NCBI GenBank assembly: GCA_003427395.1
Contig: BFEA01000046.1
Span: 455,279-519,278 of the forward strand
Reading direction: 5' to 3'
Length of the DNA stretch: 64,000 nucleotides
From: Chara braunii
Lineage: Eukaryota > Plantae > Charophyceae
Of this stretch, positions 17,601 to 40,432 are shown in pieces. Below the pieces are notes generated by a model. That model was not told the origin of the DNA. It saw only the letters and a program-made list of their open reading frames with translations, and made no database searches. Position 1 is the first letter of the stretch. Every line of letters begins with the position of its first letter. Both the position numbers and the translations under genes were made by a program.

Positions 17601-20109
17601 AGATGGATGCTGTCGAGTAAAAGGCAGGATGGGCGAGAAGCATGCGTTACTGGGGAGGACGCCTGTGAGAACGCGCAAAAGGTCTATAGAAGGGTAACTT
17701 GGTGGACTTCAGCGTGTTCCAGAGCTTGCTCACCCCGTATCATCTACCCTGGCCATCACCCCCATTCTGAGCAATGGTACTAGTGACGTGTTGGATACTG
17801 TCAATCAAGTATCGTGTGAGAGTTAAAAGAAGTCAAAGTTCTAAATGAGTGTTGATGGGCACTAGAGACTGGTACTGGGTGCTAACTGTAGATGATTCGC
17901 ACATATGACAAAAACTGTAATCGAATACGATTTATGATTGGGCACTAGAGACTGGTACCAGTGAGTATTTTGTTGGTAACCCGTCACAACCCGCAATGTT
18001 GTCACCCCTAATTACAAAAGGAAAATGTCATTTATAGGAAGCCTTGAATGAGGGACATATCGAATGAAAGTTGAGACGCTCGGGTAAACGGGGTACTCTC
18101 TCTCTTATACTGGCGGATTGTGGTTGACGCCAACTGTTCAAAGCGTCTTCATCTCTATCAGCTCCTATGTACTGTATTGGTGACTTGGACGATAATTTTC
18201 CCCTAATTGGCAGGCGTTGGACTCTTGTAATCAATCTAGCACATCGTATCTCGCATATGCCACGAGTGACAGTTCGGTGGTGATGTGTATTGAGGGTGGT
18301 GATAATACTTGATCATTCTGATCTGTCTTCTACTGATAAGGGTCGTGGAAGCAAGAGACCTTTCTAGGATTTGAGCTGTCAAACCGACTATTCGGATAAG
18401 ATTATGAAAAGTATCTAAAGCTTTCACTTCCTATTTATGTGTGTTTAACCCTCACCTCCGCCTTTTGCTTGTTTGGGCTGCCTACAAAATTATTAATCAG
18501 GGGCCTCGCCCCTTTTGTTATTGTAAAAGTAGTATGAACAACTTGCACTTCCCTTTTCCCATGAACCCTCACTCCTATAGTGTCTGTTGACTGGGTTCCG
18601 AATGACAAGCCATAGGAAACGAGTCAGGGGCCATTTAGTAACAGGGAGAAGAAGGCTGAGACCTTCGCACATTGTTGATGGACAATAAACATTTTGTTTT
18701 ACGAAGAATAGCATATTTATTGGCAAAATTCATGTTAGATGGTGACTAAAGAAAGGAAAGGGGGAAATAGGGATAAAACCTTGTTTACAAGCCCAAAGCC
18801 AAGGTCGATGCGGGAGAGGTAGTCATCTTCCAACCTTTAAAGAATCAATTCATTCGGAGTTTTGTCTCTCTGTTTGATCAAAACGATACCGACAGAAGAA
18901 AACGTGTGCTATGTCTGAAAACATTGTGACCTATGGATTACCCCTTCGGGGTCAAGTAAGATCTTGCATCAGCCTTGGAAGTGTGTGTTTCTAGCGTATG
19001 TGTTCTCAGACGCGCGCAGGTATTATGAGAACACCTCTTCATTTAAGGGTAGAGTTGCAAAACTACCTTTCGCCTTCTCAAGCATTACGGGGAAGGCCCC
19101 TTTGTCGAGGCATATGATCGGTGAGCACAAGGAAATACTTTGTTGAGTTCTCAGTGGGAGAAGAGGGGTGTTCCCCTCAGAACGTGACAGACACTCAGAA
19201 GTAAATCCTTTCTATTTTGAACTGATCCCTTTCTACTTAAGAGTGACACCATGCTCTCAGAGTCGGTTTTCCCTCACTGAGTGTAGGCAAAACCGTGCGT
19301 TGGAATTCGAATTTGGGCATAAGACCGCCCCAGTGATTCGGGCGTTGAACAAGGCATTCATCCTCAAAATTATTGTGTCGGGTATAAGCGGACCGTGGAC
19401 TTGTACCCTAGAGGTTGAGAACGAGTACATCAAACGTTTGAAGTCACCGTTTATGTCTGAGCTCGTTTCCATGTCCAAAGTGGTTGTACTGAGCTGGGAT
19501 GTCAAGCTTAAGGGTTTCCGTACTCAATGCAAGCTAGTGCTCGCAGCCATACTTTTTTTTTGTATTAAATAAAAGATACTCAGACTAGTGTTACTCGACA
19601 TGTGATCAGACTTCGTGCATGAGGTTCATACGTGAGAAAACCCTGATGCTGTATATGAGCAGGAGCGACTCCCAACCCCTTTCGTGAGCGTTGTCGGTGC
19701 GAATACCCGTACAAGGGTATCCGCCCTGTTTTTTTGCAAGCGACAGAAAATAAGTTTGGCTTAAAGTTTTAAGTATACCACGCGAGGCGCAGCTGAGGCT
19801 GTGGTTTACGTGACTAGGTGGCTGGCTAGAATAGAGAGTGTGTGGGCAAGCAGACTAGAGGCACATGTGATCTTAATTTTCGATAACTGTAGGACCGGCG
19901 TGATCACCGGTCAGATTTATTTTTTTCTGATTAAACTAGGATTTCAAAGGTTGTCTTGTGATTGGTGCGCTTGCGTGTAACTTGTGAGTACGTGCGAAGG
20001 ACGACGTCGACGGCGACATGGTTCGGTATAGTCTCGTGGTGGACGTGGAAGGTTGGCGGCCGTGACTTTTGCTGATAGGATGGTCTGAGGAATTGAAACG
20101 TTTTGCCAG

Positions 20110-20360
20110 AACTGCATGCCTCATAGTATCCTTTTATCTAGGTGTCCGCTAATACTAAACCCAGCCTTTGGCCTAACACTATTGATTACGACATTGAACT
20201 TTCATCCGGGGAATTCAGGGAATCGATGCCAGTGGGCGACGACACGGGAATATTGGAGCGGCGAGAGGAAAACCGACGCGTTAAGGGCCCGACGGGGCTG
20301 TCCCCATGGGTTTGTGGGTTACAAAGTTGGGTGTCGGGGCCAAAGGAGGTATTGAGGACC
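20110..20360 (+). other. Condensed, diverged 18S rRNA 5'-domain-like fragments inside LTR (also ~37030-37275)
   Basis: aactgcatgcctcat ~ AACTGCGAATGGCTCAT; gctaatac; caactttc-like; ggggaattcagggaatcgatgcc ~ GGAGAATTAGGGTTCGATTCC; gacacggg; attggag; all in rRNA order. Confidence 0.45.
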
Positions 20361-20949
20361 CCGCGTTTTCCTTCCTCTCGTCGTGCGACTTTTGTTTCGC
20401 AGTAATTGTTCTGTTATTATTATTATTAATATTGTTATCTTTGTTATCTCTTTCAAAGCTGGGCGCGGGCCGTATCGGGATCGATAGTGGTCAACGAGCG
20501 TGTCAAATATGGTGGTCATATTGGTAGAGTTATTCCCATGGCGGGCCTTGAAGTCCCTACCTCCAAAATCTACTACTGCCATCCAAATCGACACCAAAGG
20601 CCGCGCTAAGGGCTTGCAGTGGGCCCGCGGCCCCTGAATCTATGATGTGCATACGAGTTGGGAGTGATTTAGCCGCAAAGGAGAAAGAACCAGATTGGCG
20701 TAGTCCCCCTACAGTCTGTTCCCCGCAGGCTGCTAAGTGGGGGTTGAGCGTAAGCAAGCTCTTTGGGGCCCAAAGAAGGGAAGTTGTGCCTAGGCGGAAT
20801 AGTCGAGGACACAGTGGTGAAGGCCGCAGGCTGCGTACAGTAGGCCAGCCACATGGAATTTTCCCTCGCCCTAGTCTTCAGAGTTCTCAGATTAATTTTT
20901 GCTACTATCGCCAAGGTCTGCACTAAGGTCGCCCCACCTGAGTCCATGC

Positions 20950-21192
20950 TTCAACCAGGGCAACGGAGCCGCACCTTGATCCCGCAATCTACCTCGAGAG
21001 ACGTAAGCGGGCGTATGCCCATTGGGGCCCCGAAAGGCGGGGTGGGACAGAGGGAGTCTAGGGGGAGGCTGCTGCACTGCGGATGCATAGGGGACAACCG
21101 TCGGACTCGGGTATAGGGGCGAAAGACTAATCGAACATTCTAGTAGCCGGTTTTCCCCGGTGTTTTTCCTTCGAAGGAAAAAGCCAGGGCTA
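20950..21192 (+). other. 28S/26S rRNA domain II fragment inside 5' LTR
   Basis: 28-nt exact gggtataggggcgaaagactaatcgaac (21109-21136) followed by tctagtagccggtt; upstream accttgatc, cccgaaag and ggaggct match preceding LSU segments in order. Confidence 0.85.
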
Positions 21193-21206
21193 CTAGTTGG
21201 CGCTAA

Positions 21207-21224
21207 GTCCTTTGGGACATCCGT

Positions 21225-21256
<32 letters not shown>

Positions 21257-21321
21257 GGCCCCTGCACAAGGATGACACACATAAATCGGGAAGAAAATGC
21301 CCGACTGCTTTGTTTTTTTTT
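21207..21321 (+). ncRNA. U6: U6 snRNA-like sequence embedded in 5' LTR
   Basis: gtcctttgggacatccgttaaaattggaacgatacagagaagattagcatggcccctgcacaaggatgacacacataaatcg matches plant U6 (ACAGAGA box, AGC triad, ISL); ends in a T-tract; no USE/TATA seen upstream. Confidence 0.93.
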
Positions 21322-23530
21322 ACTACCATCGTCTTTTCGATTCGATAGAATTTGGGGCAGGGGTATTAGGCGCTGAAGAAAAGCTGCGCTAAAGAGTGCT
21401 TGGCAGCGAGGGGATGAAGGAGATGGCGAGAGTTAAATGAGGCGCAATGAAGAAAAGGGGGTTCGTGCGATTCCTAACAGAGTCGGGCGGAGGAGAAGCT
21501 GATCTCGGGGTTATCAACTACGGCGAGCCCGTCTATGAGGTTTGTTCTGTTAGGAGATCAGTTGAGAGAGAGATAGATGAGAAAGGACTGTCGGGCCATG
21601 GCAGAGAGAAGGTGAATAGGAAAGAGATTTTGTTAGTTCGGCCATCTTTCGACAAGGAAGGGGTCCGAATCGGGGTTGTGAATGAAGGCGAGTCCAAAAC
21701 TGTTGTTAGTTGAAGCGATAGAGTATTAGAATAGGTGGTGGTGGAAAAACGAAGTGCACGGGAGTTTTCGGAAGGGATGGCAGAAATCGAAGGATGAGTA
21801 ACTCGCTCTGTGAACGAACTTTAGTAGAAGAAGAAGAACGATTGGGGTTTTTCCGGCATCACGCATCCAATGGAAAACTCGGATTGCTGAATAGATAAAC
21901 GCATTCTGCAATCAGACTAGTATGGGCCGCACGTAGGAAGAACGACTAGAAGTCATGTATTTTTCCGCGTTCCAGCGGAAGGTTCGTGCTCGTTTTACAA
22001 GTGCAGTAAGTCGGATCGCAGGTCTTGTTTCTTGTCGGCTTGTCGTGCGTCTGGATCGCGACAACCTTCCTCTTTGTCTTCGAGCTTGGTCACCGTTCGG
22101 GCAATGTAGTTCTTCCGGTGACCGAAACTAGGCCGTACTCATGGCAAAGTGCATCCACTCCGCCAAGGGGCCATGAGCCGCGTGAGTGGAAGCGAGCGCA
22201 AAGACGGCGTATGAGGAGAGATAAGGGGGGCGGGGAGAGGGAGTATAGTACTTATGTGCGGAGCATAATCCAGGATTTTAAGCGGAAGATCTGTTTGGTT
22301 TTGCTCATCTGATCGATGAAAAGTAGCGTGAGGCTAACCACTGTGTTGAAGACTTACCTGTTGGATGGCGTGCTGTTCTCCCGACCAACTAAAGCATCGA
22401 TGAGGAAAACAGTTTGCCGACGTGCTTGAGAACGGGCAGGTAGGCTCCACAACCTTGTGAATCGGAGGGCTACAGGAAGCCGCGAGTTGAAGTCTTACCC
22501 ACAGACAGTGTAATGCTCACCTTGCTGGTCAGTGTGGCTGTGCGAGTCTAGCCGCAGGAGTGAAGGAGTCATCTGTTGACTTTCGCATTGTCTATTCTGC
22601 CAAGAGAGGTGGCCGGTGAGAACTGCAAGGCTCACTTGATTGCCAACGCACGACCCCCCCTGCTAAAGGGAAGAGTACAGAGCGAGCTAAAACTTAGTTG
22701 TTGATCAACGTACTGCTCATCTCACTGAGGTAGGAGAGAGTGAGACCAGTTGTAGAGGCTGCCGACTTACCTACTAGGCGAGCATTGCCTGTCCCACTGG
22801 AGCGAAAGGTAAGCCGGGGGAGGAGAAGACTGTGTTTTCCTTTCGTTTGGCCTGCGGCCTGTATTTCGGGTGGTGACCACAGAATTTCAGACCACAAGCC
22901 TTGCAGGAGGAACTCGGCTTGAGGAAGGGAAGTGTTGTTGCGAATTTGGAGGGTCGTCAGGAAGTCGACAGCCGGCAGTTTGACTAAGATTGACCAAGTT
23001 GCTGCCCGATCTTGGCTGCCATTGCGGGGCCCTCAGGCGAAGTTAAGGAACCAAGGCCCTCTCTCGCGAGTCCGAGCGCATCATTCATGTATTTGAGAGT
23101 CTCAACCTATCTCCTTCTGCCTTTCTAACTCTCAGTCTAGTCCTTGGTTACGAGAGGAAGGCGGCAGGCGGGATTGCAACCCGTAGGATCGTAGCAAGAT
23201 TCTGTGGGGAGTCCACCCACCGATTGCGAGAGCTCTGCCGGAACCAAGGCGAGGTTTTGGAGGCAAGGAACCATCAGGTATCCAATTTTCTGCCTATATG
23301 ACTGCACAATACCCATGTTTGCCTATCTCCTTTTAGTTTGACTGATATTTGTATGAGATTGCCCCTTTGACTTTGCTTTCTTTCAGGACCTAATCAGACT
23401 TAATGGTAGGAATGTGTGAGAGTGAAGCATAAGTTTTATTTTTATTTTAATTGAAAGCAGACAAAGGGGGGTGAACTGGAGGAAGGTGGGAGGAAGGCAG
23501 TTTTGCATGCGTTTGACCGGGTCAACCAAG

Positions 23531-24147
23531 GACCGGGCATTGTTTCTAAGCTGAATGGCCCAGGGCTATGTTTATTTGGCTGTTTTCTGAAGGGTCAGGC
23601 ATTGTTTCTAAGCTGAATGGCCTGGACGCTGTGTTTAATTTTTTAGGGTTGCCTGATTTGAAGTGTTTAAGTTCTTGCTTTATTCTGAGGGAGGATTTTG
23701 GTCTAAGGTTGAGCAGTGTTTCTAATCTGAATGGTTTAGCCTGAAAACCACGCACATAAGTATAAACTGAGTATAAAAGAAAGAATTCTACTTATATTTG
23801 CATGTGAACTGGCAGATGGACATTGTTTCCAAGCCGAATGGTCCAGCACTAAGCCATATCGCTAAGAAGAGAAGGGAAATTACAGAGTATAATTGGAAGT
23901 AGTCTAGGCAAGTTGAACATTGTTTCCAAGCCGAATGGTTCAGTCCCCTGCCCATATTTGCATTTCGTTTGAGAACAAAGTCAGAGAGCTATTAAATTTT
24001 GGATATTAAACAGTTCAGGGCGGCTAGACATTGTTTCCAAGCCGAATGGTCTAGTCATATGCCCAAAGAAGAGAAAAGTAGTAGTGCAACCTGTTCGTGT
24101 ATATCTTAAGGCACGTTGGACATTGTTTCGAAGCAGAATGATCTAGC
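23531..24147 (+). repeat. Array of 7 conserved-loop RNA hairpin units in 5' LTR
   Basis: attgtttcYaagcYgaatg loop, each with a distinct complementary stem (tggac/gtcca, ttgaac/gttcag, ggctagac/gtctagtc, aggttgagc/gtttagcct). Confidence 0.85.
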
Positions 24148-24419
24148 ATTGTGCCATATGTAAGTTGGGTATAAAGATTGAATCATCTGAGGGTTTCATG
24201 AACTATCTTATATGAAATGACTTGGGGTTGGTGAAAGAACTTATCTTTGTGGTTTGGCCTGCATGTGACTGAGTGAGATGACTTCCTAGTTTGAGTTTTA
24301 GTTTGATAGGTAGTTGCTTTAACTGCTCGCCACGTGCTAGAGCGATAGGAGTTTATTTCAATTCCTGCATTTTCTACGTTAACTTTTTTTGCTTAGGTCA
24401 ATTCTCACATTTTTTTGGA

Positions 24420-25030
24420 TCAAGCTACTTTCTCTACGGGAAGCGCTACCGAAATTTCTAAGAAAACAAGGAATTAGTCAGACTTCTTTTTTTTTAGGGT
24501 CCACCTTTTCTGACATTTTGGCTTAGTAAAAATATGAAAAACCTCGTTTTCTAAAGGGAGTGCTGCCCAAATTTTTGCTAACTAGGGAGTTAGACGAAAT
24601 TAGACCTTGAGAAGTCAAAGTCATTTTAGATTCTGAACTTAGCTTTGTATAAATCTTGGAATAACACTTTCTCTACGGGAAGCGCTGTCGAGATTTCTAC
24701 AAATCTAAGAAGTGAATTAAATTTTGTCTTAGTTGAACTCGGATCTTGTTTATGAGTTCATATCTGACTTAGTATAAATATGGGAAGTCTACCTTTCTAA
24801 AGGAAGTGATGCCCAAATTTTTACTAATTCAGGGAGTTTGACAAATTTTGACTTTGCAGATCTAGAGATTGGTTTTGTTTTCATTTTTGAGGTATTATAA
24901 ATTATGCGAAGGCACTCTTCCTATGGGAAGCGCGGCCGAAATTTTCTTAGTTTATAGGAGTTATATTATATTTTGATAGGTGGCAGGTCTGACAATCCAC
25001 TCTGCATAGAGGAGATTCTACCAAAGGTCT
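24420..25030 (+). repeat. ~120-bp tandem repeats with alternating A/B subtypes (also ~41360-42040, and inverted at ~4000-4700)
   Basis: ctttctctacgggaagcgctgccgaaatt alternates with tttctaaagggagtgctgcccaaattttt. Confidence 0.8.
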
Positions 25031-26816
25031 ACCTTTTCATTACACACTGACTTAGTGGTAGCCTTAGATTTAGTTAAGCAGAAAAATTTTTGAGTGAGAT
25101 CGGGATATTGAGATTATTCTCCGTGGTCTACCTTTTCATTAGGCACTGATTTAGGGGTAAATTTAGATTTAGTTAAGTAGAAGGATTTTTTAGTGAGATC
25201 GGGATATTGAGATTATTCTCCGTGGACTTATAGGTTTACCTTGGGACATTGACCTGTCTTGTGTTACAGGTCCTTTGGATCGCTTGATTCGAGATCAGGA
25301 TTAGGTTCAGCAGGTTCCTTGAGGATCACCTTCTGTTATCACTGATAACTGGTCGGTTGTCGATTCGTCGGTCTACGATTCAACTCCAATTCATTCTCAA
25401 TACTTAACCTAAAAAGGTTTTAGTCCTGATGATTTTTGTTGTTTCATTAAGGTTTTACCCGGACTTTTATTGAATGGCTTTTTAACAAAGTTAATTATGG
25501 TTGGTTGGACAAGGGTTGGGGCTTGCATGGCTGAAGCGAGGGGTATGAGTATAGAGGTTGGTTGAAGTTGACTCTATGTAGTGCTTGGATTTTTTTGGGT
25601 GACTTTTTGATGTGATTGCAGGTATGTACTGTGGTTCTGATTTTGGATTTGACTGTCTCCGATCACACATATACATATGGCTGTGAGGAGTCCCACTTTG
25701 ATTGTGAAAAGTGATCGTCACATACTTATTCCTCTTTACATATATATATATGTATGTATCTATATTGTATCTATATTGGATATTCGCGTGGCCTGAGGGG
25801 CCTACACTTAAGGGTTGAATTCGGGTTGAGATTGAGAAAGGGAAGAAAACCCCTCTATGTGGTGTATTATTCTTAAAGATTTCTTAGTCGGACGTTGGTC
25901 CTGGGCCTGGATTCGAGGTCCTTGTCCAGGACATCCTAGGCCCTAGACTCTGCATGGAAGGGATCTCCTCCTGCGCAGAGCCTATTTGCCCTGCCTACGG
26001 AGACACTCAGCCTAAAGGCCGAAGGTGTCATGGCGGCCGCACCGCTATTCCTTCAGCCGTGCAATATCGTGAGGGGGTAGGCCCTCACGATACTTCGAGA
26101 GTGACACTTGAGTGTCATAAGTGGTGCTCGGATCCACGAAGGACCGCTTGATTATGGGCACTACATAGTACGTCATTATTGCGACTGCTTGCGTATTCAT
26201 GCATTGCTAGTCGATATGATTTAGCCTTGCGTCCGCACGGTTTTGTACTAAAGTCTCGCGCGCGATAGCTATCCGATTTTCGCATCGGAAAGTTATGGGA
26301 TGGCTGCTAAGGGACTAGGAGTGTTGTCGCGTTGTATGTTTTGTGTCGTTTCGTGTATATGTATGTGTGTATGTTTTTATTATTATATTCTTTAGAGTGG
26401 TGTGCGCATCGCGTGTGGGATGCGTCCTAGTTGACCGGCGACGAGTCGCGCTAGGGATCTCGGCCCCCCCAGATGTCGATTCGCGTGCGGGTCCGATAGA
26501 GGAGTAAAGTCGCGCATACCCCTTATGGTATAACGTATGAGAAACCCCCTCGGCTGGTCCACCTCTGCGATTGCAACTGATCAGCTTTCGTACTGTGGAT
26601 TGGTAGCTCGTCGGGGATACGCCCACCGAAGGGAGGTGACAACTCCTTTAAGGTGGAGGTAAGTCGTGCCTGGCGTAGGCCCATCCTATCGTAGGGGCTC
26701 GCGAGAGGTATGGCTGGCGCACCCGCCAGGGACCTTCCTTGCCTTTTCCAACACAAAGGCTCCAGAGGTCGTGAACAGTCCCAGAAAGATAGCACATTGA
26801 GCGTCCTCTGGACTGA

Positions 26817-27596
26817 AATATATGCGATCAGATCGGGGAGTATATTGACAGGAAGGTCCCAGGCGGGTTGAGAGCACAAGCTCTCAGGAGGATAGCGGGA
26901 CGGCAAGCACCGCTTGCCACTTTCAGATTGTGGCAGGAGAGAGATGACCCGCCGATAAGAGTGGAAAAGATGGAAGGCGATGAGGAGGTGACTCAAAGAC
27001 TACAGGCGGAGACTATAAAGGAAGAACCTATAGCCGTCGAGTCGGACGATGAAGGTGAGGGTGAAAAGGTGGAGCCAGCGTCTGTCCTTTTGGGAAAGAT
27101 GGAAGATTTGTGTGACAAGGTGGGGCGGTACCGACAAAAAATAGCAGATATATGTAAAGAAGTGGAGGAATGGAGAGTCGGCATCCCCAAGGTCTTCCTT
27201 TATGATTCGGGTCCTGAATCTATGCCAGGGAAGCAAGGGTACCCTGGAGTTACCACGGTGACGGTGAGTTCAGGGCCAAGGTCTGGGATGACCCACAGAC
27301 CCCCTACTCCATTGGCACAAGCTGCATTGGCCGCACGGACTAGGGGACAAGGGCAGGGACGGAGCCAGGACCAGCCTCAGAAAGAGCCAGAGCCAGAACG
27401 CAGAAAGGAGCCTGTGGAAGTAGAGGATGACGATGATGAAGATGAGGAGGATGAAAGGCTTCGACAAGAGGAAGACAGGAGGGCCGAACAAAGGGCAAGG
27501 AAAAGGGGATCCCAGGAAGAAGCCGAGCCGGTTTTGCGCGATATAACGCCAAAGAAGAAGTATGCAATTCGGCTTGAAGAAGGGTTAGGCGTATAG
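26817..27596 (+). pseudogene. gag: C-terminal remnant of gag and gag-pol linker; most of gag is deleted
   Basis: In frame upstream of ORF 26868: NICDQIGEYIDRKVPGGLRAQ, similar to the post-zinc-knuckle motif of the downstream gag-like ORF; acidic/coiled-coil linker follows. Confidence 0.55.
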
Positions 27597-27599
27597 AGA

Positions 27600-30500
27600 G
27601 TGATTGACAAACTGATTGAGGGCCATAATGACCTTATGACCCTAAAGGAAATCCTGACATCTGCCCCAAGGCTCCGTAATGAGCTGAAGGGCAGGCTTTC
27701 GAGGCGTTTGGTACCAAGTGTCCATCTCAGTGTGATCCTGCCAAAGGAGGGAGAGTGGGCGGAGCCGGGGACAAAAATGGACTGGAAATGTGTGGCCTAT
27801 GGAATGGTGGATTTGGTGGTGAAGGGAATGAAGTGCGCAGCCATGGTGGACACAGGTGCCGAAATGAACATCATCAAGGAGGCTGACGCACGAAGGTTTG
27901 GGCTGGAGATTGACCGCTCAGATTGGGGCATTTTGCACGGGGTAAACTGCAAGGTTGTATTCTGCGGGGCGACCTCGAACGTGCTTATAGAGATTGGGTG
28001 GGTAAAGGTCGGGACGTGCTTTTTCGTTATGCCGGATGTGGACCATGCCATCCTCCTGGGGAGGTCGTTCCTATGCAGGACGAAGACCCTGATGTTCAAC
28101 AAACATGATGGGACACTGATCCTGATTCTATGTGATCCAGCGTGTGTGAATTACGAGATAATCACCTGCTGAAACACTGGACCACAAAGCATAAGGAATA
28201 GGCTCAACCTTGGTTCCTTCACTATTGAGGAGTCAGAGGACGAGCGTCGGAGACTCCTGGCGGAGCCTGAGGGAGAGGTAAGGGAGGAAGCGTTTTCACT
28301 CAGCGTATCTGATGTGAACAAGGCCATGGATATAGTGGCCACGCACGAAATGGCGGATCCAGACGCCATTCAGGCGTTGAGGGAACAAATCCTGGAATGT
28401 CCCCAAGCAGGGGAACCGACTTCCAAGGGGAAGAAAGGACTCTACTATGACGCAGGCGCAGACGGTTAGTCGGCCTTTTTTAGGGAACGACTCAAGCAGG
28501 GTTCCCAAAGGCGGTACAAAACGATAGATAAAAAGTGCCACCCAGTTCCCGTTTTCATTACTGAAGATGAGGAGGTACATTATGAGCGGGAACGAGGTTT
28601 GATACGAGAGATGAAGGAGGGAGCCTCAGTAGGGTCATGCCGTATTAACGAGGGGAACAAAGGGAAGTTGATTGTAGGAGAGCCTGACTTCCTACTGCCC
28701 CAGGAAAGAGTGCTAATGATAGAATGAATGAAGAGAACGCATCGCGCCTATGCGTTTAGAGATCAGCAGCGTGACAGGTTGGATGTGGACAAGATTCCCA
28801 TGATCCGCATCCATACCGTGCCGCATGAGCCATGGAACTTGAGAGGGGCGCGATATCCTAATCCTGACGAAGAGAAGAAGGTGGTAGATTACCTCGATGG
28901 CAAGATACGCACACACGTTGCCGGTTATTCGAGAGGACCATACGCGTCCCCTTGGTTTTGTTTTATCAAACCTAATGGGACATTGAGATGGGTGCAAGAT
29001 TTGCAAAGGCTGAATGCGGTGTGCGAGATGCAGGAGGCTTGCCGAATGCGGATGCGCTGTCGGAATCATGTGCTGGGAGGCCAATAATCTCACTTATTGA
29101 CCTCGATTCCGGATACGACCAGTTTTCGGTCTATCCGCAAGACAGACCAGTAACAGCGATGCATACGCCTCGAGGGCTTATCCATATTAACGTGGCTCCA
29201 AAAGGGTGGACGAATGCTGTGGCGATGGTTCAGAGGCATATGATTCGAGCCATGCAAACAACTAGTCCGCATATTACGCAGCCATATATCGACGACTTGG
29301 CAGTAAAGGGACCAAGAAGGAGACAGGACGATGAAGTATTGCCAGGAGTAAGGTGTTTTGTCTGAAAGCATATTCAGGACCTTAATAAAGTCCTGAATTT
29401 GCTTGAAAAACATAACCTTACGGCAAGTGGAGCCAAATCTAGACATTGCACGAGGGAAGCTACCATCTTGGGATCCATCTGTAGTGAGAGTGGCCGACGG
29501 CCAGATGCTAAGAAGACGGACAAGATTATTGAATGACCAGTACCATTCCATTCGATAACAGATGTCAGGAGCTTCCTCGGCACATGTGGATTACAAAAAT
29601 TTTGTTGTCAAGACAGAGCATTTGAGGAAGTTGGTACGTCAGAATCAGGAATGGATCTGGGGTGAAGATTAGGAGAATGCGGTGGCAAGAATGAAGGAGG
29701 AGTTTCGGGAAGGAGGACTGGTATTAGGGGCGTCGGACTGTGACGCTACGGAGGTAAGGCCATTCATTGTTGAGACGGATGCTGGACCAACTGCTTTTGG
29801 CGGAGTTTTGATCCAGGCAGATATTGAAGGAAAGGAGAGACCATTGCGCTTTGAGAGCCGAACTCTGCGTACGACAGAGAGAAATTACTCTCAGTTCAAG
29901 AGGGAGACTCTCGCTGTCCTTCACTGCCTACGGATTTTTCGAAATTACATCTTTGGCAGAAGATTCATATTGAGGGTGGATCCGACGGCTTTAGCCTTTT
30001 CCCTAAGGAACTACGTTCCATCAAATCCAACGGTTGCCAAATGGCTAACGTACATCTGGATGTTCAACTTTGAGTTGGAGCGGATCCCTAGGAGTAAGAA
30101 TAGAGCAGACGGGCTAAGTCGCATCAACTGGGATAAGCAGGAAGGGGGGGCGATAGAGGATATGCCCCCAGTTGATGGCTTCTTGGATCAGGAGGAGGAC
30201 ATCCTTCATATTAATGAGTGGTCCCCACGAGTGCCTAGTTGCGTTGGTCATCCCATCTGGCATGCGTCAAAGGGGTATGAGCAAAAGGTAGAATTGGTGC
30301 TCAAGCCTTTTGAAGAGGATCCCTGGGGTGGCAAGGATGTCCAATGGATGATGAAGTTGGCGCTCGTTGGCAAGCATAGTCTGGTGGAAGAGATAAGGAC
30401 GATAGAGGAAGGTCCAGACCAGGTAAAGAGGCACGAGGAGCTGATGGGAGGAATGTACCTCCTCGTCAATACACTTCTGCAGGAAACCTCTGATCCGATA

Positions 30501-31850
30501 GGCTCATTAAATCTGACTGAAGGAGAAGATGTTGTGCCAAAAAGCCAGGATGACGAGTTTGAAGAAGGAGAGATCAAAGAGGCCTTCCGTGCAAAGGAGT
30601 ATGATGGAATTTACCTGGAACTAGGGCTTCTGCTATCATGCGAGATAAGAACTAGGGATGCAAGTGAAATAGCCCAGAGGATGAAGCACCTCTATCTAGT
30701 GAGAGATGGTCATTTCTTTGTAAAGAGGCAAGTGGGGAACCCAAGAAGGCTCATGTGTGGAAGAAATCGCCAGATAGACGTGATAGTTGCGCTTCACGAT
30801 GGCATTACAGGAGGGCATCGAGAGGTCAATGCCACATATATCAAGATAAGCGAGCTGTATTACTGGGATGGAATGATGGAAATGGTGGTCAAGTATTGTC
30901 GATCCTGCGTACCCTGTCAGGAGAGGTCTCCCTTAAGGTCTGAAGAACTTTTGCATCCGAGATTGGAGAAGGAAGTAGGGGCCGTGGTACATCTGTACTT
31001 GCTATTCATGCCGATCGGGGATCATGGCTACAACTACATCTTCGATGCACGAGATAACCTTACTGGCTTTGTGGATGGTCGGACCAGTCGTAGAAAGACC
31101 GATCTGGTCCCCGTAAGTTGCATCGAAGAATACTACCTACGTTATGCTTTCGTCCGAGAGTTCGTGATGGACAGGGGATCAGAGTTTACTTGCCAGGAGG
31201 TGCAGGATTATTGGAAGGGTATGGTGTGGTGGCCAACTATACTACGGTTGCCCACCCACAAGCAAACGCTCCGGTTGAAAGAGGGCATAGCACCATTACG
31301 AACCTTCTGGCTAAGTGGACTGAAGGTTCGCCTAATCAGTGGCCAAGGTACCTGAGAGCGACGTTCTTCGTCGAGAATGTCATGGTGAAGAGGACCACTA
31401 AGCATGCGCCAACTATGCTATGGTATGGAAGGCATGCTACGTTCCCAATTCAGAGCTTCCTGAAAACCTGGAGGCGCCAGGACCTAGAGACCAACTTGTC
31501 TTTTGAAGAGTTGCTTGACATTCGGGCCCGACAGGTGGGGGCAATTGAGGAAAGATTCAAGAGGCATCGAGTCAAGTGGAAAGGAGTCGTATGGATGATA
31601 AGGTTCGTTGGGACCAAGCGACGCGCATGCGGAAGATGCCTTTGAGGGTGGGGGACGTCGTGTTGTAGTACGACTCATCGCTGAAAAAGCAGTGGTCCAG
31701 AAAGCTTGATAAAAAATGGTTGGGGCCCTATCGGATCATGCGATGTGGAGAGTTTAGCGCTTACCAGATTGAAGAGTTGGATGGGACAGAGTGGAAGGAT
31801 TGGGTGTCAGGGACTCGACTCAAGAAGTTCGTAGCCAGAGAAGAGGTGAG
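27600..31850 (+). pseudogene. pol: Gypsy pol: protease, RT, RNase H, integrase (stops and frameshifts)
   Basis: AMVDTGAEMN (PR); PYASPWF, IDLDSGYDQF, YIDD (RT); ETDAG...NYSQFKRETLAV (RH); HDG..GGH...CxxC, VMDRGSEF, VERGH (IN); WLGPYRI. Confidence 0.95.
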
Positions 31851-32057
31851 ATAAGGGTCCTAAAAACCCCATCGTAGTATGTAGTTAATAGGAAGAGTGC
31901 GAAGGTTGTTAGATACGATAAAAGAGTTAGGGATGGAGTTTGGCTGTGTATGTATGGTTTGACCTGAGCCTGCTATGCCCCACCTGTATGCTTACTCCTT
32001 TGTGTGCCCATCGTCTCATTTCGCCTGTTGTGCAGATCTGACTTTGCGAAGACAGCC

Positions 32058-34591
32058 ATGCCAAGAGGAGGGAGGGAGATGCGGCCATCGAGGAGACCAT
32101 CGGGGGCATTAGGGGGACATGAGCGGCATGGATCTTACCAGAGGGAGCATACACCAATACGCGACAATGGGGAGATAGAGCTATTTCTGGACAATTTCAG
32201 GAGTTATGCGAGTCGCAGGAGATGGACTGTAACTCGCATGATTGAAAGGTTGAGGGGAGCGGGACACTTGTCAGAGCCCATTGCGCGGATCTGTGAGGAG
32301 GCGAGGACTTGGCAGGAAGTAGAGTTGGCGATGCAAAGACTGAGGCCTTCACCGGAAGGGGTAGACGGGGAGCCGATCCGTCTCCAGATTGGGAATGTGG
32401 AGGAGTTTATCCCGACTTTTGAGCGATTTTTGCACGAGCAAGGTATCCTGAGGGACCAATGGATGCAAACGTTTCCACTATGGACGAGGAGAGCAGAGAG
32501 ACCATTGGCCCGAGAGATCCGGGATAGGGCGTGAGACTAGGAAGGTTGTAGGGCGCACTTGAGGGAGGCCTTTCGGAGGCCAGAGCCAGTACTACCACAA
32601 CCTAGGGTTGAGAGGCGGCAGAAAAGTAAGCGGCAAAGGGAACGTGAGCCTAGGGAAGCCGCCCCTAGTCGAGGAGGACGGAAGGCACTGACACGGCGAG
32701 ACAAGGAGCCCGCCCAACCTGCAAAGGAGCCAGGCATGTATCCGGATTGTGGACTGGGACCAGTGGCTTTTCAGCCTTTCACTGAAGGGAGGTTACGGGA
32801 GCCTCCACAACAGGTGTCAGAGGAGGTTGTGCCGACAGAGGATTCTCTACAGAGCTTGGAGGCGCACTTGGACGCCTCGCAGTGGAAGGTGCCCCAGACC
32901 AGTGGAGGTCAGGAAGTCGGGCCCTGCACCCGGAGTGAGCAGCAAGCAGGGGAGGTGATCGAGATAGGAGAGGATACTCCTCCACAACAGTTAGCCTCTG
33001 CTCCAAAAATGGAGGCCGAGCCGATGGATGTTCAGAAAGGGGGAGGGGAGCCTCAGCGGGGAGAGACACCACCACCAACCCCAGATACGATTCGATCGTC
33101 AGAGGTGAGAGTAGAGACAGAGCTGGAGGAGACAGATTGGAGGAGGGAGGTAGTCTCTATAGTGGACAAATATTTGGCAGCGCATGCTGAGGAGCACCTT
33201 GATCTAGGTGGGGCTCCAGTGGAGGAGCCATTGCAAGAACCCCATCCCCTATAAATGGAAGTACAACCTGAGGCCCCATTGGATGACATCCGCCCTGTAG
33301 GAGGGAGAGCACATCCGAGGGAAACGGTTGAGGAGAAGAGGGTCAGGACAGGCAAACGTTTGGAGGAGATATGGCAGGAGAGGCAAAGGTTGGAGGCAGT
33401 AGGGGCACTTTCGGACCAACCGCCCAGCGTACCGGCCAAAGCCCCTGGAATTTCAAACATGTGGAGAGAGTTTTAGGAGCAGAGGGCTGAAGGACTCACT
33501 TCGCCGACGAGAGCTGGTTTCGGGATAGCCAGGCAGGCGGAGGAGAGTCTGGATCGCAGAATCCGGTTTCTAGCCAGGACGAACTTCAATATATATTTGA
33601 TGTTGGAGGGTGATCTGGCAGGAAAGAAGATAAAGGAAGAAAGTCATGGGGTACGCCTTGAAGCATTGGAGGCAGAGATCCAAGAACTCAGGACATTAGT
33701 AACTGGTCAGGCCGCCATCATTCAGGACCTGTTGGAGGAAAGCAAGAAGAGGCGGGCACCCATGAGGGCAGTGGACCAGACGAAAGGGGCTCGATACGAC
33801 GTTCGGAACAGGTGGCTCAAGGATCTGGGCAGCCATCTGAGGCATGACCTTCCCAGGGGCCGTCCCTTGGAAAGGTCATCCTGGAACCAGAAGAGGCTAA
33901 GGCAAAAAGGGAAGTGGAGAAGGAAGCCTTCGTGTTCAAGGCCCCGACGGAGTTTGCAACCCTACCAGTGGAGTTTTTGGGAGTCATGCCGACATCCTCG
34001 CCAATGCCAGGCAAAGAGGGACCACATGGAGCCGCTAGTGAGCTAGCACAGGGATCAATGGAGGGGTCCATGGGTGTGCTTCTAGAGGCGCTTGACACTA
34101 TGCAGGAGGAAGCAAGCACACCTATGCCCGAGTTGGGCACTGAGATTGTAGGCGAGGACCTGCCGGCGGTGGTATCAGGAGAGACGCGGGAGAGCATGCC
34201 GCAGAGATTGGATACGCCTGAGTACATTCCAGAGGTGGGTGATCTGAGGAGTAGACTGGGATCTTGGGCTACCGGATCTGGTTCTCGGGATAAGGCCTCT
34301 AATTCAAAGCAGCAGGAGGTTGCCAGTGCTGTGGTTGGATCCCCATCATCGTCGCCACGACGGCCAAGAAAGAAGAAGTTCAAGAGGAAGGTTGATCAAC
34401 TCTGCTTCTTTTGCAAGGATGGCGTACATTGGGCCTTCGAATGTCCTAAGTTCCTCGAGGACAAGGCGGAAGGGAAGGTCTCAGAGAGTGCTGGAAAGAT
34501 GTATGATAGACAGGGTCGAGTGGTAGAGAGATCTGCAGATGGGGGTAGAGCTCAGTTTTATAGACAAAACGAGGAGAAGATGAGTGAGTAG
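32058..34591 (+). pseudogene. Second gag-like ORF downstream of integrase
   Basis: Gag-capsid-like segments (IELFLDNFRSYA; VEEFIPTFERF...LREAF), acidic/Pro linker, coiled coil, zinc knuckle CFFCKDGVHWAFEC; in-frame stops and a frameshift. Confidence 0.75.
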
Positions 34592-37500
34592 GGACTGGTC
34601 TACCTATATGACTGTCATATCACTCTGAGGATTTGAATCTAGAATTAGGATGTACTCTTTAGACTTAGGGGATTGTGCTGCTTTTTGTTAATAGTTTTCA
34701 GATTTGGAGTTTTTGCATCTACGATGGGGTTGTTCTTAGTGTTATAAGGATCAAGACGCAGTAAATAAGGCATGTATATATCTAGGTAGCCTGTTCCCTG
34801 ATTCTTGAGAGACAGACTCAGTTTATGTTTGAGGGTTGCATCAGTATGAGATTGATTTTGTTTGAGTTGAGTGAATCATGAATTTGGATTACTACTAGTA
34901 TTTCTGGATGAGATATCTCATCCCTAAGTGTATATCGAGGAAGGATTGTTGAGACCATCTCTTATATATGACGATCACTCTCGCTCTCACATGTGTGGTT
35001 TTGTCTTGATGTATGGTGGTTTTGTGTGAGAGGTGCATGAGAAACATCTCGTACTTTTATTGTGTATTTCGCGAATATGAATGGATGTCAACTGTCTACT
35101 CTTCGGTATACTCGTGCGATTTGCCCACGGGCGGGTGATACGGCCGGGTATAAGAAGAGGGAGTGCAATTTGTTTCGTGAAAGAGTTTGGGAATCCAAAA
35201 GGATTTAAGAGTCTTTGAAACTTGAACGCTTTACCATGCCGAATGTTTATTATTGAGTTGTGATGAAGACCCATAAGTTGGTCCCTCAGTTTGAGTTGTT
35301 TTATGGTGGAGACGCCTTTGAGTAGGAAGACAGTCTTTTATTTATTTGGAGACTCATCTTCAGAGAGGGAAGATGTTTAAAAAAAAAAGGGCAGTGTGAA
35401 AGTTCATCCTAGAGAGAGGGATGACTGGGAGACCTATGAAGTGGGGCCTCCTTCTTATGAAAGGTGGTTAATAGATTTAAATGGCATGGAAAGCAGATTC
35501 TGAATAATAAAGACAGACAAGAAGAACCAAGTTTTTGTTTGGTCATTGGAGGAATTTTTCGATGTCGCAAAATGGTTCATTTTTTTGGGAGATGTCATCG
35601 AGATATGTGACTTTATGACTCTGATCAAGTTGGGAGGTCACGGCCTTGTGAATCTGGCGGTGATTCTGTTTTGTGATTGTGGAGAGGTTGCCGTGTTTCT
35701 TTGTGTTGTCCCACAGAGGACTGGTAAATACCTTTTATGTGTGATAGACCTTTGCGTAGTCCCGCAATAGGCCTATATTGTTGCGACACACCGCCAACCA
35801 TTTGTGTTAATCTTGGGCATTTAAGAGAGACCCAACTAGGGGTATAACTGGCATCACTAGGACGTAACTCCTAGTGTTGGTTGTTGATCGGCGTAACCTG
35901 ACCAGCGGGCCTGCGTCTTACCAAGGGAGTAAAGACTTAAAGGGTGTGGAAGCCTATGAGGGTTTTACTTCTGCGGAACGATGTGGGATAAGGGCTGAGT
36001 CAAATGAGTCTTTTGAGTCCTGATTGAATGCTTATCAGGAGAAAGCCTATCATGGCGCAACCTGCGAGGGCACTACCGGTAAAATAACAACGCGGTGGGC
36101 CGTAGATCAGGCTTGATCACCCAGACTATGTTGGGCCAAGATGGAGACCTGACCTTCCTGTACTAGATTGCAGGAAGAGATAAGATTTATGTATATATAT
36201 TTTGTTTGGCTGTGAGAATTGTTGGGAGGGAGGCGAGAATGCCTTCGAAGGTCTCGGTTAGGGCCCGCGTTCCTAGTTATGGCCCTGCAAGCAGGGTAGA
36301 GACTTAGGACACCTACCGAGAAGCCGACGTTTGTCTAGAACAAAGGGGAGAGGACAGTTGAGGAATCCATTAAGACTTGTGCTGTAGTATAGTGATGAGT
36401 ATCCCACGGTCCTAGTGTCATGACAATGGAAAACCAGGTTGGAATCCTGACAGCATAAAGTTGTGTTTTGACACGGATTGATGGACGCCTCAAACCGAAG
36501 TCTGTCGACTATTCGGATTGGTTTCTTTCTCGTCAGCATTTTGGATTATGAATGAGCTGATAGCTTTCTGATTTGGCGATGCGACGGGGACGTCGCTTAA
36601 TATGGTCCGGTAAGTTGTCCGTGCGAATAACCTTACACGGGTATCCGCCCTGGTTTTTTGCAAGCGACAGAAAATAAGTTTGGTTTAAAGTTTTAGTATA
36701 TCGCGTGAGGCGCAGCTGAGGCTGTGCTTTACGTGACTAGGTGGCTGGCTAGAATAGAGAGTGTGTGGGCGCGCAGTTTAGAGGCCCGAGTGATCTTTAT
36801 TTTTGATAACTGTAGGACCGGCGTGATCGCTGGTCATATTTAATTTTTTCTGATTAAACTAGGACTTCAAAGGTTGTCTTGCGATTGGTGCGCTTGCTTG
36901 TGGCTTGTGAGTACGTGCGAAGGACGACATCGACGGCGACATGGTTCGGTATAGTCGCGCGGTGGACGCGGAAGGTTGGTGGCCGTGAGTTCTGATAGGC
37001 CGGTCTGAGGAATTGAAACGTTTCGGTAGAACTGCATGTCGCATAGTATCCTTTAATCTAGGTGTCCGCTAATACTAGACCCAACCTTGGGCCTAACACT
37101 ATTGATTACGACGTCGAACTTTCATCCGGGGAATTCAGGGAATCGAGGCCAGCGGGCGACGACACGGGAATATTGGAGCGGCGAGAGGAAAACCGATGGG
37201 TTAAGGGCCCGACGAGGCTATCCCCGTGGGTTTGTGGGTTACAAAGTTGGGTGTCGGGGCCAAAGGCGGTATTAATGAGCCCCGCGTTTTCCTTCCTATT
37301 GTCGTGCGACTTTTGTTTCGCAGTAATTGTTCTGTTATTATTATTATTATTATTGCTATCCTTGTTATCTCTTTCAAAGCTGGGCGAGGGCGGTATCGGG
37401 ATCGATAATGGTCAATGAGCGTGTCAAATACCGTGGTCAGCCTGGTAGAGTCGTTCCCATGGCGGGCCTTGAAGTCCCTACCTCCAAAATTTGCTACTGT

Positions 37501-37869
37501 CATCGAAATCGGCACCAAAGGCAGCGCGGCGGGCTTGCAGTGGGCCCTCGCCCCCTGAATCCGTAATGTGCATATGAGTTGGGAGTGATTTAGCCACAAA
37601 GGAGAAAGAACCAGATTGGCGTAGTCCCCCTACATTATGTTCCCCGCAGGCTGCTAAGTGGGGGTGGAGCGTAAGCAAGCTCTTTGGGGCCCAACAGAAG
37701 GGGAGTTGTGCCTGGGCGGAATAGTCCAGGACACAGTGGCGAAGGCCTCAGGCTGCGTACAGCAGGCCAGCCACATGGAATTTTCCCTCGCCCCAGTCTC
37801 CAGAGTTCTCAGATTACTTTTTGCTGCTATCGCCAAGGTCTGCACTAAGGTCGCCCCACCTGAGCCCAT

Positions 37870-38113
37870 GCTTCAACCACGGCAACGGAGCCGCACCTTG
37901 ATCCCGCAATCTGCCTCGGGAGATGTAAGCAGGTGTATGCCCGTTGGGGCCCCGAAAGGCGGGGCGGGACAGAGGGAGTCTAGGGGGAGGTTGCTGCACT
38001 GCGGATGCATAGGGGACAGTCGTCGGACTCGGGTATAGGGGTGAAAGACTAATCGAACAGTCTAGTAGCCGGTTTTCCTCGGTGCTTTTTCTTCGAAGGA
38101 AAAAACCAGGGCT
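37870..38113 (+). other. 28S/26S rRNA domain II fragment inside 3' LTR
   Basis: cgtcggactcgggtataggggtgaaagactaatcgaacagtctagtagccggtt. Confidence 0.85.
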
Positions 38114-38128
38114 ACGAGTTGGCGCTAA

Positions 38129-38243
38129 GTTCTTTAGGACATCCGTTAAGATTGGAACGATACAGAGAAGATTTGCATGGCCCCTGCGCAAGGATGACAC
38201 GCATAAATCGGGAAGAAAATGGTTGACTGCTTTGTTTTTTTTT
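38129..38243 (+). ncRNA. U6: U6 snRNA-like sequence in 3' LTR (AGC triad mutated to UGC)
   Basis: ggacatccgttaagattggaacgatacagagaagatttgcatggcccctgcgcaaggatgacacgcataaatcg...T-tract. Confidence 0.92.
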
Positions 38244-40432
38244 ACTACCATCGTCTTTTGGATTCAATAGAATCTGGCGCAGGGGTATTATGCGCTGAAG
38301 GAAAGTTGTGCTAAAAAGTGCTTGGCAGCGAGGGGATGAAGGAGATGGCGAAAGCTAAACGAGGCGAAACGAAGAAAGTAGGGTTCGCGCGATTCCTAAC
38401 AGAGTCAGGCGGAGGAGAAGCTGATCTCGGGGTTATCAACCACGGCGAGCCCATCTGGGAGGTTTGTTCAGTTGAGAGAGAGATAGATGAGAAAGAGGGA
38501 GTGTCGGGCCATGGTGGAGAGAAGGTGAATAGGAAAAAGATTATGTTAGTTCGGCCATCTCTCGGTCGATTCCGGCAAGGAAAGGGTCCGAATCGGGGTT
38601 TTGAATGAAGGCTAGTCCAGAATTGTTGTTAGTTGAAGCGATAAATATTAGAATAGGTGGTGGTGGAAAAACGAAGTGCGCGGAAGTTTTCGGAAGAGAG
38701 GATGGCAGAAATCGAAGGATGAGTAAGCTCACGCCGTCAACGAACTTGAGTAGAAGAAGAAGAGAGATTGGAGGTCTCCGGCATCACGCATCCGATGGAA
38801 AACTCGGATTGGTGAATAGATAACGCATTCTGCAATCGGACTAGTAGGGGGCGCACGTAGGAAGAACGACTAGAACGCATGTATCTTTCTGCGTTCTAGT
38901 GGAAGGTTCGTGCTCGTTTTACAAGTGCAGTAAGTCGGATTGCAGATCTTGTTCTCGTCGGGATCGCTACAGCCTTCCTCTTTGTCATCGAGCTTGGTCA
39001 CCGTTCGAGCAAGGTAGTTCTTCCGCTGATCGGAACTTGGTCGTATTCTCGACCAAGTGCATTCGCTCAGCCAAGGGGCCGTGAGCCGCTTGAGTGGAAG
39101 CGAGCGCAAAGACAGTGTATGAGGAGAGAGAAAGACAGCAGGGAGAGGAAGTAGAGTTCTTACCTGCGGAGCATAATCCAAGATTATAAGCGGAAGATCT
39201 GTTTGGTTGCTCACCCGATCAATGAAAGTAGCGTGAGGCTAGCCGCGATGCTGAAGACTTACCTGTTGGATGGCGTGTTGCTCTCCCGTCCGACTGAAGC
39301 ATCTATGAGGCAAGCAGTTTGCCTATGTGCTTGAGAACGGGAAGATAGGCTCCACATCCTTGCGAACCGGAGGGCTACAGGAAGTCGCGATTTGAAGTCT
39401 TACCCGCAGATGGTGTAATGCTCACCTTGTTGGTCAGGGTGGTTGTGCGAGTCTAGCTGCAGGAGTGAAGAAGTCATTTGTTGACTGTCGCATTGTCTAT
39501 TCTGTCGGGAGAGGTGGCCGGGGAGAATTGCAAGGCTCACTTGATTGCCTACGCACGGCCCGCCCTTCTAATGGGAAGAGTAAGGAGCGAGCCAAAACTT
39601 AGTTGTTGATCAGCGCATTGCTCATCTCACCGAGGTAGGAGAGAGTGAGACCAGTTGTAAAGGCTGTGTACTTACCTACTAGGCGAGCGTTGTCTATCCC
39701 ACCGGAGCAAAAGGTAAGCTGGGGGAGGAGAAGACTGTGTTTTCCTTCGTTTGACCCGCGATCTGTATTTCAGGTGGTCACCAGAGCATTTCAAACCACA
39801 AGCCTTGCAGGAGGAACTCAGCTTGAGGAAAGGAAGTGTTGCAGCGAATTTGGAAGGCCGTAAGGAAGTCGACAGCCGGAAGTTTGACTAAGGTTGACCA
39901 AGTTGCTGCCCGATTTTGGCCGCCACTGTGGGGCCCTCAGGCGAAGTTAAGGAACCAAGGCCCTCTCTCGCGAGTCCGAGCGCACCATCCTTGTATCTGA
40001 GAGTCTCAACCTATCTCCTTTTGCCTTTTTAACTCTCAGTCTAGTCCTTGGTTAAGAGAGGAAGGCGGCAGGCGGGATTGCAACCCATAGGACAGCAGCA
40101 AGACTCTGTGGGGAGTCCACCCACCGATTGCGGAAGCTATGCCGGAACCTAGGCAAGGTTCTGGAGGCAGGGAACCATCAAGTATCCAATTTTTTGCCTA
40201 TATGACCCCACAATACTAATGTTTGCCTATCTCCTTTTAGTTTGACTGATATATGCATGAGATTGCCCCTATGACTTTGCTTTCTTTCAGGACCTAATCA
40301 GACTTAATGAAAGGAATGTGTGAGAGTGAAGCATAAGTTTTATTTTTATTTTGATTGAAAACAAACAAAGGGGGGTGAACTGGGGGAAGGTGGGAGGAAG
40401 GCAATTTTGCATGTGTTTGACCGGGTCAACCA

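Follow-up and report, generated by a model that had tools for sequence, protein, structure and literature searches.

Reverse transcriptase (RT) that switches templates is known to produce chimeras of U6 snRNA with other sequences (PMC4476161), and double template jumps, by which two or three host RNAs are joined, give tripartite chimeras (PMC2104539). The resulting U6 chimeric retro-pseudogenes, which include U6/L1 copies, chimeras made by other LINEs, and the tripartite copies of Magnaporthe, carry full-length U6 from its +1 position, are fused in the same orientation to the cDNA of another RNA, and are promoterless and non-functional (PMC4476161, PMC2104539). In the U6/LINE chimeras, U6 takes the 5' place and a 5'-truncated LINE or mRNA the 3' place; poly(A) and a TSD are present, and no insertion gives rise to further copies (PMC4476161, PMC2104539). 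Another setting in which U6 meets a reverse transcriptase is provided by retroviruses, the particles of which are selectively enriched in U6 and further Pol III transcripts (PMC4752605, PMC1885669, PMC4931115). Old human snRNA copies have been associated with LTR elements (Giles et al. 2004, as cited in PMC4476161); the cases concern animal retroviruses and ERVs, and are few and ancient. Cassandra, Helenus, and Ajax (TRIMp3; PMC10886601, PMC10853983, PMC7215508) carry the sequence of a small Pol III RNA, derived from 5S rRNA or tRNA, in both LTRs and hand it down within the family. They are miniature, non-autonomous elements, and the part that they captured contains an internal Pol III promoter, the boxes of which are conserved and even track the host gene (PMC10886601, PMC10853983). 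Finally, aberrant template switching is a recognized route by which plant LTR elements capture sequence, read-through being another (PMC13317346), and the foreign sequence, once incorporated in an LTR or in the internal region, is then propagated as a passenger; the cargo in these elements consists mostly of mRNA or gene fragments, or of pieces of other elements (PMC13317346; maize survey, PMC2774510).

Here, we describe a U6-derived sequence that lies in both LTRs of a giant Ty3/gypsy retrotransposon in the charophyte alga Chara braunii. Positions refer to the window, by which we mean the whole stretch of 64,000 nt that was analyzed, unless another locus is named. The sequence resembles the U6 chimeras described above in that it has full-length U6 from +1, is joined in the same orientation to sequence derived from another RNA, and is promoterless and without detectable function. 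It differs from the U6/LINE chimeras in that U6 is the 3' partner of an rRNA fragment, is embedded in an LTR, and has been multiplied across diverged lineages, and it falls outside the Group IV LINE-type U6 chimeras, in which a LINE, SINE, or mRNA truncated at its 5' end is joined to the 3' end of U6 (PMC4476161). With retroviral snRNA packaging it shares the route that we propose below, namely uptake of U6 into particles and the joining of U6 to the element by RT (PMC4752605, PMC4931115), whereas it is set apart from the animal cases by its charophyte host, by the location of U6 inside the LTR itself, and by the nearly intact state of the copy in one lineage. Like the Cassandra group, the Chara element has a small Pol III RNA sequence in both LTRs that is inherited within a family; unlike that group, it is of autonomous type, is ~24 kb long, contains pol domains, has no A or B box signal beyond chance, and carries motifs that decay. 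Judging from these sequence features, it does not belong with Cassandra, Helenus, and Ajax. The cargo travels as a passenger, as does other host sequence captured by plant LTR elements. In the literature available to us, the coverage of which is incomplete, we found no description of U6 in the LTRs of a plant-lineage element and no reported case of a plant LTR element with spliceosomal snRNA and rRNA as cargo. The Chara LTR U6 is thus best described as a new example of a known process, and it provides a plant-lineage example of an LTR element with two abundant non-coding host RNAs. The reading that we favor, and consider likely, is that it is a U6 snRNA retro-pseudogene in the LTR of a Chara braunii Ty3/gypsy family, which originated in an old template-switch capture and has been decaying as a passenger.

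The features of the element in the window, all on the forward (+) strand, are as follows:

19692..26641 (+), 5' LTR, ~6.95 kb; starts TGTCGG and ends ..GGTGACA (TG..CA)
21060..21206 (+), LSU rRNA-derived fragment in the 5' LTR; RF02543, model positions 850-1004, 33.9 bits, E 5e-7; outer limits uncertain
21140..21197 (+), imperfect hairpin of ~60 nt in the interval between LSU core and U6; fold energy -25 kcal/mol, z = -2.0
21207..21321 (+), U6-derived copy in the 5' LTR; RF00026 at 21207-21317, 86.6 bits, E 1e-20, model positions 1-105
21240-21246, 21252-21254, and 21313-21321 (+), ACAGAGA, AGC, and T9 of this U6 copy, read from the sequence
26642..36615 (+), degenerate internal region; ORFs in Ty3/gypsy order, Pfam
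26868-27596 (+), gag-like ORF; relatives in Chara braunii only
27600-28172 (+), protease; Pfam
28988-29365 (+), RT fragment; Pfam
29682-31355 (+), RNase H and integrase zinc finger; Pfam
36616..43802 (+), 3' LTR, ~7.19 kb; last 4 nt (GACA) missing or mutated
37982..38128 (+), LSU-derived fragment in the 3' LTR, counterpart of 21060-21206 by alignment; core with C>T at CpG
38129..38243 (+), U6-derived copy in the 3' LTR; RF00026 at 38129-38239, 80.4 bits
38162-38168 and 38174-38176 (+), ACAGAGA (intact) and AGC (changed to TGC) of this U6 copy, by alignment; T9 kept

The host element is ~24 kb long and belongs to Ty3/gypsy, with two direct LTRs around gag, PR, RT, RNase H, and INT on one strand and Pfam hits to PF13975, PF00078, PF17917/PF17919, and PF17921. 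Its LTRs, at 6.9-7.2 kb, are unusually long, and self-BLAST recovers them as direct repeats (19690-26637 paired with 36614-43802). The start of the LTR is the same in four further loci of the family (L003, L008, L009, and L011), and the LTR-internal-LTR plan recurs in three of them (L003, L008, and L011). Among the matches listed for the RNase H-integrase ORF, 120 of 120 are from Chara braunii, as are all eight relatives (8/8) of the gag-like ORF, of which the best is 62% identical and none is close. Because its ORFs are broken, the copy in the window is dead. No TSD match was found after the 3' LTR of this copy and no PBS or PPT was recognized in it; a conserved motif precedes the 3' LTR in the window, L009, and L011. 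The same 4 nt, AGCG, stand immediately in front of the 5' LTR in the window (19687-19691) and in L011 (3181-3185), which may reflect chance or a target preference. The LTRs also contain internal tandem duplications (25026-25228, 42035-42237, and 43092-43351, with repeat units measuring 99 nt and ~159 nt) as well as a stretch rich in A+T (at ~24-26 kb and 40-44 kb), and together these explain the difference in length between the two LTRs of the window. Elsewhere in the window there is an inverted copy of the 3' two-thirds of the LTR family (2677-4981 and 8272-8849, - strand, 68-76% identical), which does not include the U6/LSU region: its similarity ends at LTR position ~3300, and the family copies that we fetched start to align by BLAST at LTR position ~3240-3320.

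Both LTR copies of U6 exceed the RF00026 gathering score of 44 over the full model, and they lie 16,922 bp apart at equivalent sites of the long direct repeat. A preliminary description of this DNA, made from the sequence, had stated that the 5' LTR copy begins at the natural U6 5' end, keeps the ACAGAGA box, the AGC triad, and the ISL, and ends in a T-tract. Our analysis bears this out: the Rfam alignment opens at model position 1, the G of GUCC (21207); all three motifs are present, the ISL with one G>A in its loop; and T9 stands at 21313-21321. The ISL stems of this copy equal the Rfam consensus; G>A at 21266, in the loop of the ISL, and G>A at 21279 are the only departures in this part. 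Both of these changes, which are private to the 5' LTR copy, are G>A at CpG sites. The change of AGC to UGC that had been noted in the 3' LTR copy is also there, with T replacing the A of the triad at 38174, and the 5' stem-loop of this copy is weakened. The last ~30 nt of U6 are unlike the Rfam consensus, which is the reference here rather than native Chara U6, and include a 10-nt insertion and the terminal T9; the tail up to ..ATCGGGAAG is similar to U6 genes from other eukaryotes, and the final ~20 nt may be remodelled, as the preliminary description had it, or native to Chara. Single-strand folds of the U6 copies gave z values from -0.7 to +1.7 and were not informative. Antisense to U6 and the LSU piece, an ATG-started ORF of 145 aa (20892-21329 and 37814-38251, - strand) is open in both LTRs. 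Database searches with it brought up nothing but ORFs antisense to U6 genes of other eukaryotes, of which several belong to tandem U6 arrays, and the similarity is confined to the U6 core (21209-21293); we take this ORF to be spurious.

The sequence upstream of U6 is derived from LSU rRNA and has the same orientation as U6. Its score of 33.9 bits is below the RF02543 gathering score of 50, as expected from a short fragment, and the match was reported by a 147-nt Rfam query only, having been missed in searches over 19000-27000 (E <= 1) and 20880-21210 (E <= 10). The confident core extends from ~21104 to 21175, or from about -100 to -30 relative to U6 +1. Within it, 28 nt (21109-21136) equal the eukaryotic LSU consensus exactly, and over 56 nt the core is 85.7% identical to a piece of an independent contig (L001), positions 1-140 of which are LSU by Rfam at 115.5 bits. 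Part of the hairpin that separates the LSU core from U6 is a perfect palindrome of 20 nt (21163-21182), for which shuffled sequence gave 0 matches and which has 2 mismatches in its 3' LTR counterpart (38085-38104); the hairpin may have arisen by snap-back during reverse transcription. In the LSU-U6 block, U6 is the 3' partner, and LTR sequence follows directly after the T9 of U6. Because the LSU core ends ~30 nt before U6, with the hairpin stretch between them, the LSU-to-U6 junction may not be a direct one, and LSU and U6 may have been captured in two separate events.

U6 genes of the plant type are transcribed from a type-3 Pol III promoter with a USE at about -70 and a TATA element at about -30. 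They have no internal promoter and need these upstream elements. Our promoter test used the plant-type USE and TATA, the promoter type of native Chara U6 being assumed. In the 150 nt that precede each U6 copy, the + strand contains no USE (RTCCCACATCG, <=2 mismatches), no TATA is visible at -30, and searches for an A box or B box near the copies gave no signal beyond chance. The -30 to -70 region had been described as LSU fragment rather than USE/TATA, and the RF02543 match, with its core at about -100 to -30, agrees. With no USE or TATA and with an LSU fragment in the place of the promoter, the further claim that this copy is not a canonical Pol III U6 gene stands as well. One exact USE 11-mer (ATCCCACATCG) occurs in the internal region of the element (35979-35989, - strand), where ~0.06 exact matches would be expected by chance according to our estimate. 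It has no TATA or snRNA downstream, and we take it to be a chance match.

A comparison of the two LTRs in the window provides a measure of what happened to U6 after insertion. In a MAFFT alignment, 591 of 6889 aligned columns are mismatched between the LTRs (8.6%), and the U6 copies differ at 9 of 115 (7.8%), which is indistinguishable from the LTR background (binomial P = 0.47); of all 115-column windows of the LTR, 49% have <=9 mismatches. The LSU piece differs at 10 of 147 positions between the LTRs, and the neighboring kilobases at 7.5% and 10.6%. The changes that arose after insertion fall on conserved sites of U6, namely the AGC triad and the 5' stem in the 3' copy and two CpG sites in the 5' copy. 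Thus, U6 has drifted like the remainder of the LTR since insertion, there is no purifying selection on the RNA body, and this neutral drift rules out host use of these two U6 loci. The test is silent on the active phase of the element, because all parts of a dead copy decay.

The mature 5' end and the U-tract of the captured RNA are present and the promoter is absent, which indicates that the source was RNA. An RNA source would in turn bring the natural +1 and the U-tract along but no USE or TATA, so that no Pol III product is expected. Further, U6, the LSU piece, and the genes of the element are all on the + strand, which fits capture during minus-strand synthesis. The anatomy of the block therefore suggests the following template-switch route. 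During minus-strand cDNA synthesis in U3, RT would have jumped from the element RNA to the oligo-U tract at the 3' end of a mature U6 packaged alongside, copied this RNA as far as its 5' terminus, and there been forced to switch onto LSU rRNA; after a stretch of this rRNA, it would have gone back to the element RNA. Normal strand transfers would then have put the LSU-U6 block in both LTRs, to be inherited by later copies. The captured U6 would not be made by Pol III and would be present at most within the Pol II RNA of the element. After insertion it decays with the LTR, and sister lineages have lost its motifs or the whole block while they kept transposing. Such a capture supports the idea that virus-like particles of plants, like those of retroviruses, take up U6 and rRNA.

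The history of the block within the family was studied in seven Chara braunii loci (assembly GCA_003427395.1), fetched through annotated pol and gag relatives. The U6 part of the LTR can be judged in five loci, the window and the following four of those fetched:

L009, one U6 copy in the 3' LTR, 59.7 bits; ACAGAGA changed to GCAGAGG, ISL disrupted, no T-tract
L011, two tandem U6-derived copies in each LTR ('a' and 'b')
L008, alignable across the region; decayed LSU core in both LTRs, U6 unrecognizable
L003, youngest element sampled, LTRs 96.5% identical; segment after about LTR position 680 replaced

One or two U6 copies each are thus found in three of the five judgeable loci, and the family includes lineages that transpose without the block. 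The pol tree has two clades, one in which the window and L007 are joined by L009 and then by L008, and one made up of L011, L010, and L002 with L003; the p-distance between the clades is ~0.24. In L009, U6 directly follows LTR sequence homologous to that of the window and lies ~925 nt into the LTR, compared with 1518 nt in the window. In L011, ACAGAGA and AGC survive in the 'b' copies (56.7 and 46.9 bits), the ISL of which is destroyed, and the 'a' copies are under the gathering score and read GCAGAGG. We scored decay at those 73 columns in which five outgroup U6 genes do not vary (contigs L004-L006, which served as outgroups only, among them), and counted 5 changes in each of the two window copies, 18 in L009, 17 and 21 in the L011 'b' copies, and 26 in L011 'a'. 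The changes in L011 'b' are unevenly distributed, with 2 of 38 invariant columns changed in the 5' half and 15 of 35 in the 3' half; the 'a' copies have the reverse pattern, the 5' half being more damaged. The replaced segment of L003 differs even from that of L011, the pol of which is only 11% apart, and the variable region of the LTR is a mosaic in which whole segments are swapped between elements at this pol distance.

The window and L011 have a common 5' junction (..GCTAA|GTCC) and similar sequence just 3' of U6, and weak LSU-like remnants, with low posterior probabilities, lie upstream of U6 in L011 and L009. From the junction and the 3' flank common to the window and L011, together with these LSU remnants, we infer a single capture: the LSU-U6 block would probably go back to one original event that predates the split between the pol clades. 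Pairwise flank identities were discarded as a line of evidence, since the gap penalties gave ~75% identity even for shuffled sequence.

A few observations concern individual members of the family. The U6 block of L011 is tandemly duplicated at a spacing of 180 nt (4474-4752 and 22777-23055), and the duplicates have decayed in complementary halves; in its 'a' copy, changes of the types A>G and T>C are clustered in a run. After the second LTR of L011, the start of the internal region occurs again (29340-29390), giving a tandem LTR-internal-LTR-internal array. L007, the closest relative of the element in the window, contains, just past the point at which it breaks off, a fragment of bacterial-type LSU rRNA (24649-24865, - strand; model positions 2655-2912, 106 bits) in what is a Chara nuclear contig; this fragment may have been inserted from an organelle or may be a further piece of rRNA that was captured.

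One feature of the window lineage fits poorly with one old capture followed by clock-like neutral decay. When the element of the window inserted, its U6 had <=2 changes at the 73 invariant columns, both in the variable 3' tail, whereas the L011b lineage had already acquired 16 changes at such columns before its insertion. This pre-insertion asymmetry (P of ~1e-3) is opposite in direction to the pol branch lengths. The LSU core of the window was likewise perfect at insertion (28/28), and is decayed in L008, L011, and L009. In addition, L009, which belongs to the pol clade of the window, and L011b, which belongs to the other, have five identical derived changes, compared with ~1.5 expected by chance on our estimate. 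That both U6 and the LSU core were nearly pristine points to re-templating from native RNA, or else to a re-capture not long before insertion.

The strongest alternative to an undisturbed old capture is therefore that the old LSU-U6 block was overwritten by native sequence in the window lineage shortly before insertion, either by homologous template switching of RT onto RNAs packaged with the element or by ectopic gene conversion with U6 genes and rDNA as donors. We give it somewhat less than an even chance. Such an event would refine the capture history and makes no claim of function. The contrast between the window at insertion and both L011b before insertion and L009 (18 changes in total) is what this explanation would predict, and so are the derived changes that L009 and L011b have in common across the pol clades. 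Selection can neither restore lost states nor preserve a scrap of rRNA, so that overwriting by native sequence is favored over purifying selection; the functionless LSU core is as fresh as U6, so the effect is not specific to U6, and the mosaic structure of the variable region of the LTR points the same way. Against these observations must be set the small sample of three U6-bearing lineages, the possibility that LTR and pol histories differ through recombination or that rates vary among lineages, the weak homology of the LSU remnants in L009 and L011, and the putative nature of the native donor. The freshness of both pieces in one lineage provides a handle on RNA-templated "refreshing" of captured sequence.

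A bolder version, which we consider unlikely, is that the block has been re-templated repeatedly from packaged native RNAs, or else that the 5' half of U6 is a cis-acting RNA module for the active element. If the former were true, the block would keep a continuous log of the host RNA that a plant-lineage retrotransposon takes up, and the process could explain the tracking of host genes in Cassandra-type elements. If the latter were true, possible roles of the module would include the binding of La, LSm, or capping factors and an effect on how the genomic RNA is spliced.

An origin at the DNA level, in which an LSU-U6 chimera made by a LINE, or a piece of genomic DNA, was inserted into one LTR of a master copy and came to lie in both LTRs later through retrotransposition, would leave a similar end product, and U6 chimeras from non-LTR elements are common in other eukaryotes (PMC4476161, PMC2104539). 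We nevertheless regard it as quite unlikely: LINE chimeras have U6 as the 5' partner, followed by LINE or mRNA sequence and poly(A), whereas U6 is the 3' partner here; neither poly(A) nor a TSD was noticed around the block when it was read by eye; and genomic DNA would be expected to bring promoter sequence along.

The preliminary description had also suggested that the U6 copy may act in cis within the RNA of the element, as a base-pairing partner for U4, U2, or 5' splice sites or as a binding site for LSm/Prp24, or that it may be processed out. A functional reading of this kind, extended to binding of La and to an excised RNA that benefits the element, seems to us highly improbable. The motifs on which it would depend are decayed or gone in lineages that were still transposing (L009, L011a, L008, and L003), and random decay of ACAGAGA and AGC across family copies, here found in L009, L011, L008, and L003, is what that description itself had named as evidence to the contrary; together with the neutral rate of the LTRs, this leaves both cis action and processing-out unsupported. 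No post-insertion constraint was seen, and no excision mechanism is evident. Some observations do suit a function: one copy has intact catalytic motifs, both retain the T-tract, U6 lies in sense orientation within the element, the 5' half of L011 'b' is far better kept than its 3' half, and the U6 of the window lineage was unusually well preserved before insertion. However, the L011 'a' copies show the opposite, with the 5' half worse, and the LSU core of the window was preserved equally well, which argues against a U6-specific cause. For the active phase of the element, which the comparison of its two LTRs does not reach, a function of the LTR U6 is unlikely. Scarcely credible is a transcribed variant U6 gene that relies on a non-canonical promoter, whether internal or LTR-borne Pol III or Pol II, for which the full-length body, the natural start, and the T9 terminator after it could be cited, against the lack of an upstream USE/TATA and of a downstream B box beyond chance, an AGC mutated in one of the two copies, neutral divergence, and upstream sequence that is rRNA scrap.

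For annotation, the decaying-passenger reading that we favor has a practical consequence, in that many of the "U6 genes" reported by covariance-model scans of the Chara genome will be LTR cargo. Counts of snRNA genes in Chara, a key streptophyte alga, should be filtered against the U6-bearing LTR family.

Two further features of the window lie downstream of the giant element. A second pair of direct repeats (45813-46600 and 53686-54473), each 788 nt long, 92% identical, and 7.9 kb apart, probably corresponds to the LTRs of a different LTR retrotransposon, smaller than the giant one and immediately 3' of it. The only other Rfam hit in the window is a tRNA-Leu (anticodon TAG) with a long variable arm at 61931-62016 (- strand, 55.5 bits).
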